A stretch of 64,000 nucleotides of DNA from Kudoa neothunni (Eukaryota > Animalia > Cnidaria): positions 1 through 64,000 of the forward strand of contig OZ199839.1 of assembly GCA_964304625.1 (NCBI GenBank), in the 5' to 3' direction. The translations under genes were made by a program, and so were the position numbers. Below, piece after piece: positions 8,765-22,220 of this stretch; the stretch's first letter is position 1; every line of letters begins with the position of its first letter. The notes under the pieces were generated by a model. That model saw nothing but the letters and a program-made list of their open reading frames with translations. It was not told the DNA's origin and did not search any database.

Positions 8765-11700
8765 TAGGTGTGATTCCAGCTAAAATCAAGTTGTTGAGTA
8801 GGATTATTTACTGCGCCTGCATTTTTGAACTCTCCCAATGTTTAAATGCAAACACTGCCAGTTTCACGGATATGAGTGTATCTCTAAAGCCTTACATTTT
8901 CATACTGGGTTGGTTTAGATTTTCAGTCATGTCCACGAAAGAGTAGAATTTTAGGAGCCACTCAGTTTCAGCTAACTCCAGATATACTCGACATCGACAT
9001 GTTGCAATTAATGTTATACTCACCGGCGACTAAAATTCGTTGCGATGCTGTGCTTATTTATATTAATTTTTTCACGCTTATTTATATCATTATTTGAGAA
9101 GTTGGAGCATACAAAAATTATTCACAATTTTCATTTTTAACATTTGACGATTCTTTACAATTAAACCTAAATTTGATCAAGTTCTCATCGCGTGATCCTC
9201 GCGTTGTGGGTAGAGGAACTTATGTTTATGCTGATTTCTGAATTATTTTACAAAATCATGTTTCATTACCACATGATTATCAATGAGACTATATTTTGAT
9301 TAAATAATTACATAAAACTGACGTGTAAGGATGTGTTAAAAATATTTTATCCTATGCGCATTATTTACCTGAACGAAATAGTGGTGATAGTTGATATAGG
9401 AACTGACGATGAGTTTTTGTTTGCTCAAAAATAATAGCAATCATCTATTTAATTTCTCAGTATCAACAAGAAATCATTCGCGAATTCCAAATATATGTAG
9501 TGTGTCAACTGCAGAGGGTTACGACACCATGTGTATATCAGAAAGTAAGTCCACAAAAGCACATAACTAACCTAGTTAATTAATCATTCCCATAAATAAT
9601 GAAAAAAATATTAATATATATGTATGTAAACGGTAATATATACGAGTATACGTCTATTTTAATAATGATGGATGGATGGATGCAAAACCAAATCTTGTCC
9701 CACCAAGGTGACGTTTTTTCCGGAATAGATTATCGGTTGAACAAAAATTAGAATTAACAAGCATTCTCAAACTAATTTATTATTGCTCGATGTAGAACAC
9801 GATTGAAACAACCCTTTCAATGATTCCACTATCAAAATTGACCATAATAAACTGTTTTGTAAAAATTTGGGCAGTTTGCACCAACCATTCCACGCAAAAA
9901 GAAAAATTTTGTGATGATGGCTACGTTATCGAAATAGATGAAAGCCTTTTACATGGTAAATGAAAAAACAACAGAGGGAGATATCTAAAAGCTGATTCTT
10001 GGAAACATTCCTCTACTAAGGAATTTTTAGTCATTAGATATTCACAGAATGTAATAAAAAAGCTAAGTTATTGTTTATTAATGGTATTTTTAGGTAGACA
10101 TGAATGACAGCAAATATTGCCCAGAATGTGACGAATTATCTGATGATCATATATGTATCTGATATTTGTATATGCAATCGCTATAATATAAAATAGCTCT
10201 TTGTACACATCCAGAAAGATATGGTAACAGAGTAGATGGCCCTTGGATTTTCGGATCTTGGTTATGCTCAATTGTTGATAACGGAAAAAGTACGGTTAAA
10301 GAAGTAAGATATTTCGATGTAAAAAGGATAAATCAAAAAACCTTGATCCCTATAATTGAAGCGGAAATTTAAAAAGGCTTTACAATATATATAGTGATGA
10401 GTGGTCTGAGTACAATAAATTGACAGAACTGGGATATAACCATTTGAAAATCAATCACTCAGTGGCATACTCTATAGGCGGGATTCATTCTGATACTATG
10501 GAGTCATGTTGGGTGGTTTAAAGCCGAAACTCCTGAAAATAAGAGGAGGGTTGAGTAACTCAAATATCGAAGGTTACCCCAAGGATGAATGGTGTCGTTC
10601 CGTTATTGTAACGAAATTCCAATTATTAAATAACTATTAAAATATTATTAATAAATATTATTAAACGGAATAAAATTCTATTTTTTATTGGCGCATGAAT
10701 AAGCAATTATTTTTATGATAATAACTTGATTAAAATTATTCCCAGTTCATATATTCTAAAAATTTTGAATATCCTTGAAAAATAAAAGAAATAAAGGTCA
10801 TATCTATGACAATAGTTCGAGTTAAATTGTATTTCATTTTTGTGCCCAATAATAAAACAAGCCCTTAAAATATTATTATTACGATGGATTATATTACAAT
10901 AAATAAATAAAATGAAAAAGGTAAAACCAAAAATCATACGAGAAATCTCTTATCCATAGTAAAAAATGTTGGTGCCAGTATAAACGCGCACTTTGTAAAT
11001 TACTGAAAATTACATGGCTATAAAAATGGATTAAAGTATATTTAGAACGTATCACAAAAATATAATTAGATCAATATTCTCTATTTTTTTTTCCACGTTA
11101 ATGTCATATCTATCCTAGAATAATTTTGATTTGTAGTATACATTGATCTCTCGATTTTGAAATAAAAGACAAATATCACTTAACCGAAAAGAGTGAAAAA
11201 AAGATACACTAAATTTATCGTTAACTTTTTGAAAATAAAAATAAAATACATGTTAAATTTCATATAGAAAATCATATGAAATAAATGTATAAACTAAATT
11301 AGCTGTAATAAAATTATGCCAGCCCCAAAATTGATTATAAAAGTTTATAAAGTTTCCACTGTACCATTTTTCCTTTTCTTAGTTAACTCTAATTACTGTT
11401 GTTTGATATTTATAAATGATTCTATGACCTTTAACACATAAATAACGATATTATATAAATTAATAACAGCTAAAAACCCCTTAGAACACACTAAATATGG
11501 GCAAAACAATAATTAGAAGGAAATCATGGAATGGATTATATGAACAACGTGAGGATTAAGTGTAAACAATTGTCAGTCGCTAGAAATAAAAATTTGTGAA
11601 TAATTTTTGTATGCTCTAACTTTTCAAATAATGATATCAATAAGCATGAAAAAATTAATTAAAAATAAGCACAGCATCGCAACGAATTTTAGTAGCCGGT

Positions 11701-14800: not shown

Positions 14801-15543
14801 CTTCACATTTCAAATTTTCCAATGCATTAAAGGGCGAATTAAGCGGATTGTTTTCCCGAAAAAATAGCCACGCAAATAGCGAGACCCTCTATCTCGATGA
14901 TCCCAACTTTTTAAACTTAATTAACAGTCTATATGAGATATAGTAAAGTTTAAAATGTAGTTTTATCGAATCTCTTGAATATTCAGAAATAAATAATAAT
15001 TAAAAATGGAAAACCCACGCTTTATCGAGGTCTTACTGTAATTGAAAATTTATTTGCGAGCCATAGGTTCCCGATCTCTGATGTAGTAAATAAAGGTTGC
15101 CAACTTATTAAGCAATAACAAGGCACAAATATAGTCGGATGTGGCTATTAGTCCATTTATGTAATTCCGTAATTTTTCTTTAAATTTGTTTTTATATTAC
15201 TTAAACAAAAAATTAAAGGATTTTATGGTAATAGTTATGTCAAAGAGCATTAAAAAAGTTTATTTTAATCTTGAGTTTAGGCAAGATGATAATAACATAT
15301 TAGAGACTCTACTAGATAACTGTTTTATTATGTAAAGTTCGGAATCGACTTTCATTCAAATCTCACTCTAACAACGAGACCTTTCTTAACTAGCGCAGTT
15401 TCTATCTCGTGAATAAAGCTGCTGTTAGGCCCAAGGCATATTTATGTGCTTAACGCAAAGTTATAGCTTTATCCATCATATTTGACCGAAATAAATATTT
15501 AAATATTGTGAGTTATAAATTTAGATTAAATAAAAAAATTAAA

Positions 15544-17558
15544 ATAAGGCTTTTGGTCTGATCGTTATACTGGGCTGCATTAGTCGCTCTGAATTGTGGA
15601 TATTTTATGTGTTAAAACAAAGTTAACATGAGATAACGACGGTTGTGGCTAAACCAACCAGATCTATCCATCCCACTAAGTATCACAGAATATTTTATGT
15701 TACATTCATCCTAGAGAATTATCAATTAAATGTCTTATATTGACTCTTCCATAGTATGCTTAATGGATTTACTCTAGATATAACGTTTAAATTTGTCCTA
15801 AAAATATAAAATTGGATAGATGATTGGGGTATCCAATCGTTCGTGGCGAAATCTATTGAAATATGTGAATGGGACACAAATAAGTCACACGAAGTCGGTG
15901 TGCACGTTTTCTATGAGTTATCTTATAAATATATGTATATTCATGTTGCTCGAATCAAGCATAACATTTTTTTCCTAGGTACTCTGAGGAGGATTACGAA
16001 AGATATACAGATGAATATTCTGAATATATAGCCCCTTTAGGAGAATTCGAAATACACATAAATAATAAAATCAAAATCGATGGGAAAAGTGGTGGCTTAA
16101 TTGATTTGCTAAGAAACAACTACAATTTCAAAAATGGAGAGATTCGTATTTTTTTATTATAAAGCTTAGTATAATATAAATTCTAGTACCTATTCCATTC
16201 ATTACCATTTCTCCTAGTAAATTTTCGGTTGGAATATTAACCAACAACCCTGATCTATATGATGAATGGATGGTGAAACAATTCTCCATCAATGATAAAA
16301 AATACACCGCGGTTGTGAATGACTTTTACTGTTTGGCTCTCGACGACATCATTTTCGAATCGTATAATCGACTATACCTTGTATATCATTTAGACATTCG
16401 GTTATGTTTACTTACTATAGTAATAGATACAACCTAAACATGAATCAGGTATTTCGATGAATGGCCTTCTTCATCCTTGTCTTCTAAGTGGAGTCATACA
16501 GAATCATCATAAATCAGCTCTATCATCCCGATGTTTTTCAAAACCTAAAATTAAATTCAACGTTGATTTTATTGGGTCGTATGATTGGAAAATTTGCAAA
16601 GCTCTAATATTCTCGATTATTCGCGATGGTCGAATTTGTGGCAAAAACCATGGTTGCAATTTTTCAAACCTCACCAAAAGACTCATTTCTAAGGAGATCA
16701 GAAAAATCTATGTATATTTATGTTTATTGAATACATGTAAATATTTTAAACCTAGCTCTATAATAATTATTACCAATTTACTGGAGGAACCAGTGTCAGT
16801 CTATTGAAATCATTAATCTATCATCGACATACAAAGTGTTCCAACGATAAAATTCATTCTATCGATGTATTTAACTCTTACGGAGTGATAATGTAATGGT
16901 GTAAAGGATAGGAATAAAGTCGCGTATGAATGTTTTTATTTGGATATAATGTACATTCTTATGTTGGATCGAGCTTTCGATAATCAGGATGCATCCATAC
17001 ATGCTGAACCATTGTAGCGATAATTTATCGTGTTACGTGGACTCTTATTAAAAAATTTAGGCCAACTTATGAATCTAAAAAGGATTATATTCACTTATTT
17101 GCTGACTCAATTTTTGGTTCAATATTCTCAGTGGAGCAAAATACTATAATGTAAATAGGTTGTTTTATACCTTATTAAATTAAATTGAACATAGTGAAAC
17201 AACCCACATAACAGATTTCCAACAATATTTGACTACTAGCATCAGTTTAATAGCGCCCACCACATCATTGTTCTCGACAACATCAATAACAGTTAAAGTC
17301 CCTATAAGTACGAGTGTTCAGACAATTTCATCCTCTACCTTGGAAGAAATTTTCATCGCTAATTTGCCAATATCATACGGTAGAAATAAAATTAAAACCA
17401 TTCTGAAACTACAAAGGATGCGCTCATTAATTACAACAACATGTATACTATCGCTTGTTTTGCTGGCTTTACAAAGCTTTTTATTTTACTTGATTTTCAA
17501 TAAAAAATCTACCTGCCTCCAAAGACCTGCTGATTTTCAATTTAGTAGAATGCGATAA
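15544..17558 (+). CDS. Divergent CD39/E-NTPDase-fold (GDA1_CD39) membrane protein with Ser/Thr stalk and C-terminal TM; catalytic motifs lost; 5' end carries lesions
   Basis: Open spliced frame of ~477 codons over exons 15820-15934, 15979-16145, 16187-16380, 16427-16711, 16756-16866, 16907-17013, 17061-17150 and 17195-17558. All introns GT-AG, 40-47 bp. Cys pattern FYC/HPC/SRC/KIC/RIC/HGC/TKC/YECF matches the CD39 C-lobe. Upstream signal-peptide-like segment has ATA (15544) and TGA (15559); a TAA lies at 15807. Confidence 0.75.
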
Positions 17559-18124
17559 TTCTTTTCTTTATTTATTCTTGCTTATTCCAATAAATTATTA
17601 CTCTGTCATATTGTTTATCTGTTTATGTTTGTCGATTTATTTGGCTATAACGCTTTAAGTGACCACTGATATTTATTTAATGCACATAATTTATTCTAGT
17701 TTAGCAATTTATTGCATATAGTTTTACAGCTTGAATTTGTGTTGTTGTCAAATAATAAATAAATAAACATTACCTGATTACATTTAGAAGATTTTAGGAT
17801 GATAATAATAAGTCGATTTTTCTACATTTTTATATTTTATTTCATATTAAGATTAATTAATTTCATAATTCATTAACTTAGTTATAAGCTGAAAATCTTT
17901 GGAACGGAATTTGTTGGCACAAGGCCTATGTGGTTATTTTGGAACAAAATTAAATTACGATTATTAAAGTAATGATAAGTGGCTACTAAATTTTTCCAAT
18001 AATGCTAAAAAATTTGGTTTTAAATTTTATTTGGATTCATTGTGAGTTATATATTAAACGATACTGCATTTTTTAACCTAAAGGAAAGTCAGAAAAAATC
18101 AAGGCGTAAAATAATAGTACAATA

Positions 18125-19845: not shown

Positions 19846-21610
19846 CTAACCGTGATACCCGGTCCGGCTACGCTCGGGGTGTTGGGAATATTTAATCTTG
19901 GAAAAAAATTGAAATAAAAATGTTTTAAATTGTATTTTTTAATATAATTAACGTTTCATTATGTTAATAGCATAAACATCTGCCCGAAGTTTACTGCGCG
20001 AAATAAACAGTCATAAACGAAACAACAAAATTTTACTTAATAATGTAAGCAGTTATTATATTTAAGAAGAAACAGGAAAAACCCAATATAAATACATTGA
20101 AAAAACTATAATACAAACAAATGAACCTTATTTCGTTTAAATCTCATCATCATTATTTGCTGCATCCGTGGTTTTAAGAAACCATGAAAAGCAAATAGAA
20201 ATCGACGTATACGTGAGGAATTACAACGGAATACAACTATACAGTCAACGTATAAAGGAATATAGAATACGAAATTGAATTCTCACTTGAATTCTTTTAT
20301 TGGCTTGATAAGATGAATCATACCTACAAGAATGTGGTAAATTAATTTTTGAACATGGAATCTTATAAACGCTTACCAAAGAAATTTTGTCACATGCAAA
20401 ATCTTGAAAAATGCAGACAACAACGTTCAAAATACTTTCACAAGTATATTCAAAGATATAACAACAAAATACAAAGCCACTTTTAGATCTAACGCGTTTA
20501 TTTAATCAGGATTTGTTGTTTCTTTAAGATTTGGGGTCAAATTGGTCTTGGAATTGGATCGTAGTAGCTTTAAGACGATGGCGAACCGACATTTTACAAA
20601 ATGTATTTCTATGAAGATTTGCATATGCAAGCTTAGAATTGATCAGAAACACGTTTCCAGAACAGATACGTATTTTTCTAACACCCAAGATATGTTTAAC
20701 AATCAAAATAGCTATACTTTCAATTTTAAGCTTGTTTTGGAAATCCATCCAACTTCTAATGCCATTACAATGATAGATATTGACAGCATTCTTAAGAAGA
20801 AAATATAGGTTGATATAACACTCCAAGTCATTATTAATGGCCCCCATAAAGTTAGATCAGCAGCATGAAGTATTAGACATTTTTTTGTAAAATTAACGCA
20901 ACACACTTCAAACAGTAATCGAAACATAATAATCTCATAACCTACTGCAACACCCAAAATTAAATGTCGGGGATGATGAATGTTATCAGTTTTGCACTCC
21001 AAAAATTGGCAAACAAAAATGTGTCGTGTAAAGTTTCTACTTATATCGCTTAATGATGATACAATGATGTTGTTCCACATAACATGGTAGATAATTCCGA
21101 AAAATGAAATCAAAGAAACATTGTTTCATATAAATAAATTTGAATGAAATTTATATAAAAACTGAATTTAAATAGGCGAGTAAGATCCATAAAGATAAGA
21201 AAATGATAGCATAGCCAGTTACCGTAATATCTCCCTATAAACTATATTTTTGGTCCGACCATTCATTTGGAGAAAAACTGTATAAATTGTGTTTGGAACC
21301 TACCCTGGAGTTGGCGACATACAACTGCTCATGAGAAAAACGCGGTTGCTCCAAATTTAAATTGGCAACTTTGAAGGTTTGCTCTTGGGCCTTATTTACG
21401 AACATTGCAAAGCATGGTTTGATGGGAAATAGCAGTCTTCTAAAATTAAAGGTGGCGTCTGAAGGAGCAATCGGAATATTTACATTCTCTTAGGCACAAC
21501 CAGTTACGATAGTGGCCAAAATAAGATAAGACATTGGTGAATCCAAATTTCTTAGCAATACGATTGAGGTGCCTATCTTTAGGAGAAGTAGAAGCAGGTG
21601 GATTTCGATT
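19846..21610 (-). mobile_element. Helitron 3' portion: Pif1 helicase C-terminus relic plus 3' terminus
   Basis: ~21220-21600 minus reads LLLKIGTSIVLLRNLD..IPIAPSDATFNFRRLLFPIKPCFAMFVNKAQEQTF..FSHEQLYVANSRVG..RTKNIVYREIL. Hairpin (gcGTAgc) and TTAG|T at 19845-19880. Confidence 0.8.
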
Positions 21611-22220
21611 TGAAATACGTATTGATTGCGATTCTTAATCACACTCCCGCTATAATGTTGTTTCCACAGCTCTCCTCTTTTGAATTCGCCTACTTCGACG
21701 TAGCGTTGAACTGTGCGTACTAAATTGTATATCCATGCGAACAGTCTATTCGAAAGCGCGGTTGAGTGTGGGGTGCCTTGGTGCGTAGAGTCAAAAATAT
21801 TAACTCTAAAAACAATTAGGGATGCGATCGAATGATAATGTTTAATTGCAACAACTTATTCGCAAACAAATGTTTTGAGGAAGAAAAGAAGAAATTTCTA
21901 ATGCATAATATTAGAGTACTAGATGCAAAACATCAATATTAAAGTAATTGGAGGCGGAAGATTTTGCATGAAATAATAAAGTGTTAATTAAATTAATCAA
22001 TCTATCGATAAAAAAATTACCAGATTATGAGATGAAGATGTTTTACAGACTTTCGATGTTTTTCATTTCATTTAATAATTATAATAATAATAATAAATAA
22101 TAATAATAATTTAAAGTATTTGTTTATTGTATAAATTTGTTTTCAATATTACATCGATACACAGATTTATCGCCCATAACCTCTGCCCTAGGTGGCTCTA
22201 ATCCTCTCGATCATCTAAAG

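Follow-up and report, generated by a model that had tools for sequence, protein, structure and literature searches.

Can an enzyme fold be kept and multiplied in a parasite genome after its chemistry has been discarded? This question is raised by positions 15820-17558 of contig OZ199839.1 of the myxozoan Kudoa neothunni (assembly GCA_964304625.1), where a sequence-only reading had proposed a spliced gene for a catalytically dead surface protein with the fold of CD39, a nucleoside triphosphate diphosphohydrolase (NTPDase). The stretch analysed, referred to below as the window, comprises the first 64,000 nt of the contig. Ecto-NTPDases are central to purinergic signalling and are surface, virulence-associated enzymes in many parasites. 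K. neothunni infects tuna muscle; members of the genus cause post-harvest softening of the flesh, and myxozoans are economically important in fish, yet to our knowledge their host-interaction molecules are almost unknown. The best explanation of the locus, to which we assign a probability of about 0.62, is that its eight exons make up the 3' portion of a gene with around 11 exons, starting at or before 15454, and that this gene belongs to a family of membrane-anchored, catalytically dead proteins derived from an NTPDase.

Gene structure and the family in the genome

Exon boundaries and phases were read from the sequence and checked both by hand and by script. The DNA of the window is eukaryotic and AT-rich (30% GC), and the eight exons, here labelled A to H, all lie on its forward strand, separated by seven GT-AG introns of 44, 41, 46, 44, 40, 47 and 44 nt that are richer still in AT. 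The phases are compatible throughout, with ATG, CTA, TTG and ATT as the codons split between exons, and the open frame runs for 477 codons from 15822 to a TAA at 17556-17558. The frame proposed by the sequence-only reading was therefore recovered on re-reading, and all of the peptides quoted from it are present in the spliced product. Paralogues agree on the 41 nt intron between exons B and C (16146-16186).

The exons can be matched by position to the five apyrase conserved regions (ACRs) of NTPDases. Exon A (15820-15934, 115 nt), conserved in 13-15 paralogues, enters in phase 1, leaves in phase 2 and is the equivalent of the exon encoding a helix and ACR2; exon B (15979-16145, 167 nt), which reads IDGKSGGLIDLLRNNY, occupies the place of the exon with ACR3. 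Exon C (16187-16380, 194 nt) encodes the ACR4-equivalent strand, in which FITISPSKFSVG replaces DxGGxSxQ, and continues through the cysteine of an FYC motif. The cysteine-rich segment of the C-lobe, HPC...C...C...C.....CNFS, is encoded by exon D (16427-16711, 285 nt), with five invariant cysteines and two N-glycosylation sequons. Exon E (16756-16866) holds the seventh C-lobe cysteine in KCSND, equivalent to FCSND of ENTPD3, and exon F (16907-17013), reading AYECFYLDIMYILMLD, holds the eighth. Hence the full set of eight that had been reported was counted again in exons C, D, E and F (one, five, one and one, respectively), and it is invariant across the paralogues. Exon G (17061-17150) reads LFADSIFGSIF at the position of ACR5, the WxLG motif being lost; the F, D, G and S are invariant in the family alignment. 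Lastly, exon H (17195-17558) comprises a Ser/Thr-rich linker (approximately 17196-17345), a transmembrane (TM) segment (approximately 17424-17498), a tail and the stop codon, 31 nt past which an AATAAA at 17589-17594 is probably the polyadenylation signal.

The suggestion that the gene might belong to a lineage-specific family was borne out by six-frame searches of the K. neothunni genome with exons C and D, which matched 19-22 loci; iterated exon profiles found the exon order A-H, with introns of approximately 40-50 nt, at 15 or more of them. Members have the plan Z-A-B-C-D-E-F-G-H and share the motifs KFSxG..NP.LYD.W, HPC...CNFS, CF.L.IIY.LL.D and F.D..FGS. Small clusters of them are distributed over the three large contigs, with two copies at contig ends, namely the window copy and another at C3:5 kb. 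Compared exon by exon, the window copy is 26-59% identical to the 19-22 other loci. The proportion of synonymous differences from paralogues (pS) is 0.71, which is saturated, whereas that of nonsynonymous differences (pN) is only 0.37-0.39, the values for the nearest paralogue being 0.71 and 0.37; since the former has saturated while the latter is far lower, the comparison points to copies that are old and have been kept under long-term purifying selection. Two copies at C2:11538554-11539073 and C2:11577939-11578458, approximately 39 kb apart, scored identically in all of the searches, as would be expected had a segment been duplicated recently.

Beyond this genome, a 901 bp metagenome contig (ENA ERZ28624939 scaffold_21136; L044) includes exons B-F of one member, with 30% GC and the same short-intron plan. 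It is no more than 45% identical to any copy in the K. neothunni genome, and therefore a second, different organism has the family. No full-length member was found among the 1.84e9 representative sequences into which about 15 billion database proteins had been clustered, and a scan of JGI metagenomes with exon C found no relatives.

Descent of the C-lobe from an NTPDase and loss of the catalytic motifs

Homology searches were run exon by exon. With hhalign, the family alignment of exon D (A2) matched residues 283-369 of ENTPD3, represented by a 14-sequence alignment, with a probability of 95.4% and an E value of 1.9e-8. A HMMER search of 1.84 billion proteins with A2 gave seven matches at E 1e-3 or better. 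Three of these, at E 5e-5 to 6e-4, are assigned by Pfam to GDA1_CD39 (PF01150), and among them is full-length Danio ENTPD3, in which the match covers 291-369. Of the rest, one or two (P0001 and probably P0007) represent pieces of family proteins encoded in other organisms, and two more are artefacts due to repeat proteins. The top match of A2 in the PDB was to residues 255-319 of rat NTPDase1, with five cysteines in register, ranking first of 177,635 at an E value of 0.36. Exon F is colinear with residues 421-445 of ENTPD3 (CF.L.IIY.LL.D against YCYSANYVYTLLVDGYKF; hhalign E 0.0021), and exon C had its best local match to ENTPD3 in the expected place, at 252-271, although with an E value of 0.45 this is not significant alone. 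The ten-cysteine pattern of the surface subgroup ENTPD1/2/3/8, which forms five disulfides and has eight of its cysteines in the C-lobe, is present.

A six-frame scan of the genome with PF01150 detected two canonical NTPDase genes (L001/L002 and L003) and no family member. The second of these, L003 (G000:C1:884130-887228, minus strand), is of the surface type, with a cysteine-rich exon and a C-terminal TM segment, and retains ACR1 (DAGST), ACR2 (GTGGLR), ACR4 (DIGGSS) and ACR5 (WTLG); its ACR3 region looks atypical (AEDETEAEYDFIASIY). As evidence independent of the profile matches, its gene structure resembles that of the family. Exons of 115, 166, 195-204 and 285 nt correspond to family exons of 115, 167, 194 and 285 nt, and five of seven intron phases are equal (1,2,0,0,0,0,0 in L003 and 1,2,1,0,0,0,2 in the family). 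Exon A has both the size (115 nt) and the flanking phases of exon 2 of L003, and in each the first conserved cysteine lies one residue ahead of the first phase-1 intron. In direct comparisons with L003, the exon D family profile matched the cysteine-rich exon at an E value of about 1e-3 to 1e-4 (0.001 by hhalign), and by hhalign exon A aligned AKSIEICE with KTAIDQCI at the expected spot (P 0.0097). Exon C was colinear with the ACR4 exon over 53 columns, placing FITISPSKF on DIGGSSLQV, at an E value of 0.11 that is not significant on its own. L003 is likely to represent the progenitor type of the family.

Taken together, the profile matches of exons D and F and the gene structure shared with L003 show, as judged by sequence comparison, that the C-lobe descends from a CD39-type NTPDase. 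The colinearity with CD39 that the sequence-only reading had extended along the whole product thus stands for the C-lobe; the N-lobe gave no significant profile signal, and there it is gene structure and colinearity, rather than sequence statistics, that suggest the same ancestry. The family proteins would be expected to have the two-lobe ASKHA (actin/Hsp70-like) fold. Profile searches of the PDB with exon C, and with exons B and C read through, returned no NTPDase, a feature search of the ESM Atlas gave no usable match and Rfam found nothing in the window.

The ACR motifs are the phosphate-binding and catalytic elements of NTPDases. Regular expressions for the consensus sequences of ACR1 (DxGSxxxR), ACR2 (ATAGxR), ACR3 (GxxEGxxxWxxxNY), ACR4 (DxGGxSxQ) and ACR5 (WxLG) were run on each forward frame at 19 loci of the family, and none matched, apart from a single stray WVVG away from the position of exon G; the same scan recovered the motifs in the controls L001 and L003. 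In the window copy, the equivalent of ACR1 is ILGCIS and that of ACR2 is YELSYKY, within VFYELSYKY of exon A and without ATAGxR. At the position of ACR3 is DGKSGGLIDLLRNNY, which retains the NY at its end and lacks both the Trp and the catalytic Glu, whilst ACR4 and ACR5 are replaced by TISPSKF and ADSIFGS. The absence of ACR2 and ACR5 and the substitution of the catalytic regions had been anticipated, and the individual replacements, such as that of ACR4, largely agree with our re-reading; the registers of exon B with ACR3 and of exon G with ACR5 are those that we infer from position. Because all five motifs are missing, the structure-function relationships established for NTPDases predict that the family proteins would not hydrolyse nucleotides by the canonical mechanism, in which cleavage of NTP and NDP depends on a divalent cation.

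Membrane topology, the 5' end and alternative explanations

Exon H begins with approximately 50 residues of which 45-50% are Ser or Thr, followed by a hydrophobic helix of 19-25 residues (Kyte-Doolittle mean of 2.43 over 19 residues) and a basic C-terminal tail of 19 residues. This agrees with the stalk and single C-terminal TM segment described previously, and the term 'mucin-like' is plausible for the linker. The linker exon is a novelty of the family relative to L003, because in that gene ACR5 passes straight into the TM segment, with neither an intron nor a linker. In paralogues the N terminus is a short, hydrophobic exon beginning with Met and resembling a signal peptide; given these signal exons, together with the linker and TM segment seen in the window copy, intact copies would be type I membrane glycoproteins.

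The 5' end of the window copy differs from what had been proposed, which was a gene starting at 15820 with a signal peptide in its product. Position 15820 is instead an internal phase-1 acceptor: it is preceded by an (A/T)TAG that is conserved in paralogues, and exon A needs 1 nt from an upstream exon. The ATG at 15820 was rejected as a start codon, being outside the conserved frame, and there is no signal peptide within 15820-17558. At least three further exons lie upstream. The most distal, at 15454-15507 on the forward strand, is a putative remnant of a signal-peptide exon, RKVIALSIIFDRNKYLNI, bounded on its 3' side by a consensus donor (GTGAGT, 15508) that sits 41 nt before the acceptor of the next exon. 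It has no in-frame ATG, the frame being closed by a TAA at 15451-15453, and the only ATG nearby (15444-15446) is one base out of frame; the 2 kb upstream of this region yielded no alternative exon with a start codon. The paralogues L006 and L007 have intact exons with a Met and a hydrophobic stretch at the same place (MMKTLNYLVLLNLFYY... and MKHLFSYIFLVNLLL...).

The next exon, at 15549-15621 (forward strand; AFGLIVILGCISRSELWIFYVLKQ), which emerged from a comparison of the upstream regions of paralogues, has its acceptor AG at 15547-15548 and a phase-1 donor at 15622. The acceptor and a start with (Y/F)G are common to L005, L006, L007 and L021, for example KYGLLIIMDTSENIFICYER, and this start occupies the position of the NTPDase strand KYGIVLDAGSS, although the hhalign signal against NTPDases is not significant. 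A second piece, reading SQNILCYIHPRELSIKC, is probable at approximately 15681-15731 on the same strand. One DNA run (X1) has an insertion of GTTT behind 15743, absent from the reference, which would make a phase-1 donor. Because the signal exon lacks an in-frame ATG and this donor is missing from the reference, the 5' end of the window copy may be defective, polymorphic or mis-assembled. Relative to the window, X1 has single-base indels at ten further places (14322, 14854, 14859, 14874, 14891, 15014, 15167, 15189, 15207 and 15342), which, like the GTTT insertion, are all outside coding exons; a twelfth difference, the omission of one base at 16149, is located in intron 2. Either strain differences or errors in an assembly made from low-coverage long reads could account for these.

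A number of results weigh against the explanation preferred here. Of the exons compared with ENTPD3 by hhalign, Z, A, B, C, E and G gave no significant match, and the best weak match of exon B to L003 is out of register. The proposed check against PF01150, run on each exon, divided: Pfam reported nothing for single exons, PF01150 not appearing even at an E value of 10, whereas the exon D profile did reach GDA1_CD39 proteins. An AlphaFold2 model of exon D alone, from a 14-row alignment, was of low confidence, with a predicted local distance difference test score of 57, and Foldseek found no match to it in the PDB. No reads from three RNA runs of 2026 mapped to the locus, but these runs were probably of uninfected host and so put the junctions to no test. 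Were the family not derived from NTPDases at all, the cysteine pattern of exon D would have to be convergent or a chance resemblance. Such an origin would fit with exon D being the only exon to be significant individually, and with the two false positives among repeat proteins at similar HMMER E values; with the match to ENTPD3 and the exon plan of L003 to account for as well, we regard it as the least credible of the alternatives. It is hardly more probable that the proteins are still active as nucleotidases, or as other phosphohydrolases, through non-canonical residues. The two-lobe scaffold and its disulfides are conserved, a D/N-E dipeptide precedes the SGL motif of exon B throughout the family and the D..FGS of exon G is invariant, all of which favour this reading; however, every one of the 19 copies lacks all five motifs, including the DxG loops of ACR1 and ACR4 and the Glu of ACR3, and conservation within the family is lowest in the N-lobe.

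More serious is the possibility that the window copy itself has become a pseudogene, or is decaying in its subtelomeric location although the family is otherwise functional, so that no membrane protein is made from it: its signal exon is off the ATG frame and one 5' donor is damaged. Against this, approximately 500 downstream codons are free of stops in a genome with 30% GC, the seven short introns are canonical and the encoded protein is under purifying selection relative to its paralogues. An upstream exon may also lie further away and, the assembly being built from low-coverage long reads (PMC12239612) with the X1 indels nearby, the damage at the 5' end might reflect errors of assembly or variation between strains. 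We therefore consider decay of this copy to be a substantial possibility, but the less probable one. The proteins might, alternatively, be luminal, in the endoplasmic reticulum, Golgi or vesicles, or be shed or secreted, rather than residing in the plasma membrane. An intracellular or secreted location is known for several NTPDases (4-7), the tail is short and topology prediction does not distinguish between compartments; but in sequence the family is closest to the surface group ENTPD1/2/3/8, whose ten-cysteine pattern is shared, and a Ser/Thr-rich stalk beside a TM segment is typical of cell-surface glycoproteins. Such a location is hence unlikely, if more easily imagined than a surviving enzymatic activity.

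The preferred explanation, that of a membrane-anchored family derived from an NTPDase, can be set out as follows. Duplication of a gene for a cell-surface CD39-type NTPDase would have given rise to the family of about 20 copies, which appear to have kept the disulfide-bonded C-lobe scaffold and the ancestral exon plan and to have lost all five ACRs in every copy examined. Intact copies would consist of a cleavable-looking signal peptide, a degenerate two-lobe ectodomain, the linker of about 50 residues, probably O-glycosylated, a TM segment and a basic tail. The subtelomeric window copy, with its eight intact downstream exons, may be inactive or mis-assembled at its 5' end. The loss of activity, the surface location and a function as an adhesin, receptor or antigen are all suggested by sequence features, and the proteins would most likely act as a non-enzymatic coat of the parasite or as a binding module for a ligand of host or parasite. 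An expanded, conserved family with its scaffold kept and its chemistry discarded would, if confirmed, represent the recruitment of an enzyme fold as such a module, and would provide a concrete candidate surface family for myxozoans.

A bolder and distinctly doubtful proposal is that Kudoa, and perhaps other myxozoans, might have a multigene, variably expressed surface coat built from the dead ecto-NTPDase fold. Its ectodomains would bind nucleotides without hydrolysing them, or bind a host factor, and would operate at the interface between the plasmodium and host muscle, either as decoys or sensors of host ATP/ADP or as immune-evasion antigens. If this were true, the variant surface proteins of parasites would gain a scaffold not previously described for them, and a pseudo-apyrase family would be on record for the first time.

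Genomic surroundings and known systems

The genome searched comprises 40,260,978 bases in three large contigs and a mitochondrial contig. Upstream of the gene, a near-identical peptide (..SLFEKLEHTKIIH.F.F) is encoded at 9012-9137 on the forward strand and at 11539-11658 on the reverse, forming an inverted repeat that brackets approximately 2.4 kb and may mark the termini of a DNA transposon. Downstream, open frames at 21238-21855 on the reverse strand resemble the C-terminal region of a Pif1-type helicase (Pif1_2B_dom in Pfam, E 0.003) and are probably left over from a Helitron-like element. The telomere motif (TAAACC)n does not occur in the window. On the mitochondrial contig, a 4.2 kb stretch (L048) has 42% GC, as opposed to approximately 30% in the nuclear window, and carries an extremely divergent COX1 (G000:C4:2716-3945, minus strand) in which 8-11 TGA codons are read as Trp. 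AGA is read as Arg (FIRAE, GIPRR), and the two readings together correspond to a code of the cnidarian type. A nematode origin, to which the short introns and low GC had pointed, was rejected on account of this code and of HSP70, whose best matches, in arthropods and vertebrates, are at about 78% identity, with no nematode protein near it and no close relative in the database.

The published assembly, made from yellowfin tuna data, consists of 40.2 Mb in three chromosome scaffolds and a circular mitochondrial genome, with 30.41% GC and introns of 49 bp; the accompanying paper does not mention the family, and its annotation was built from protein hints, since the RNA reads that mapped were few (PMC12239612). 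Pfam does not detect the family when searched exon by exon, and no full-length member turned up in the protein search above; the family is therefore likely to be missing from, or mis-modelled in, annotations of this kind. No description of such a family was found in the literature searched on NTPDase pseudoenzymes and on myxozoan apyrase and NTPDase families.

Compared with ENTPD1/CD39, ENTPD2, ENTPD3 and ENTPD8, the family has a homologous C-lobe, with eight cysteines in register, colinear segments and a C-terminal TM segment. It differs from them in the absence of all five ACRs and of approximately 45 residues between the equivalents of ACR1 and ACR2, in having an apparent signal peptide (in intact paralogues) in place of the N-terminal TM segment, in the extra intron and Ser/Thr linker of approximately 50 residues ahead of the TM segment, and in its expansion to about 20 fast-diverging copies. 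Pseudoenzymes in general, and the truncated ENTPD5 known as mt-PCPH (PMC3829800), likewise represent members of an enzyme family that lack catalysis and may act by binding. However, mt-PCPH is the oncogenic product of a single gene, truncated by a frameshift (PMC3829800), whereas the proteins described here are full-length, conserved, expanded and altered in membrane topology.

In organisation, a parallel is provided by the expanded VSP-like and RIFIN/STEVOR-like surface families of the myxozoan Sphaerospora molnari (bioRxiv 10.64898/2026.02.11.705288). These similarly combine a signal peptide, a cysteine-containing ectodomain, one TM segment and a short tail, and occur as tens of clustered or subtelomeric, fast-diverging copies. 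Unlike them, the K. neothunni family is predicted to be built on a dead NTPDase scaffold rather than on CXXC repeats or a PIR-type fold. What is new in comparison with the known NTPDases, and largely supported by the evidence presented here, is an expanded family of pseudo-apyrases with a changed topology.

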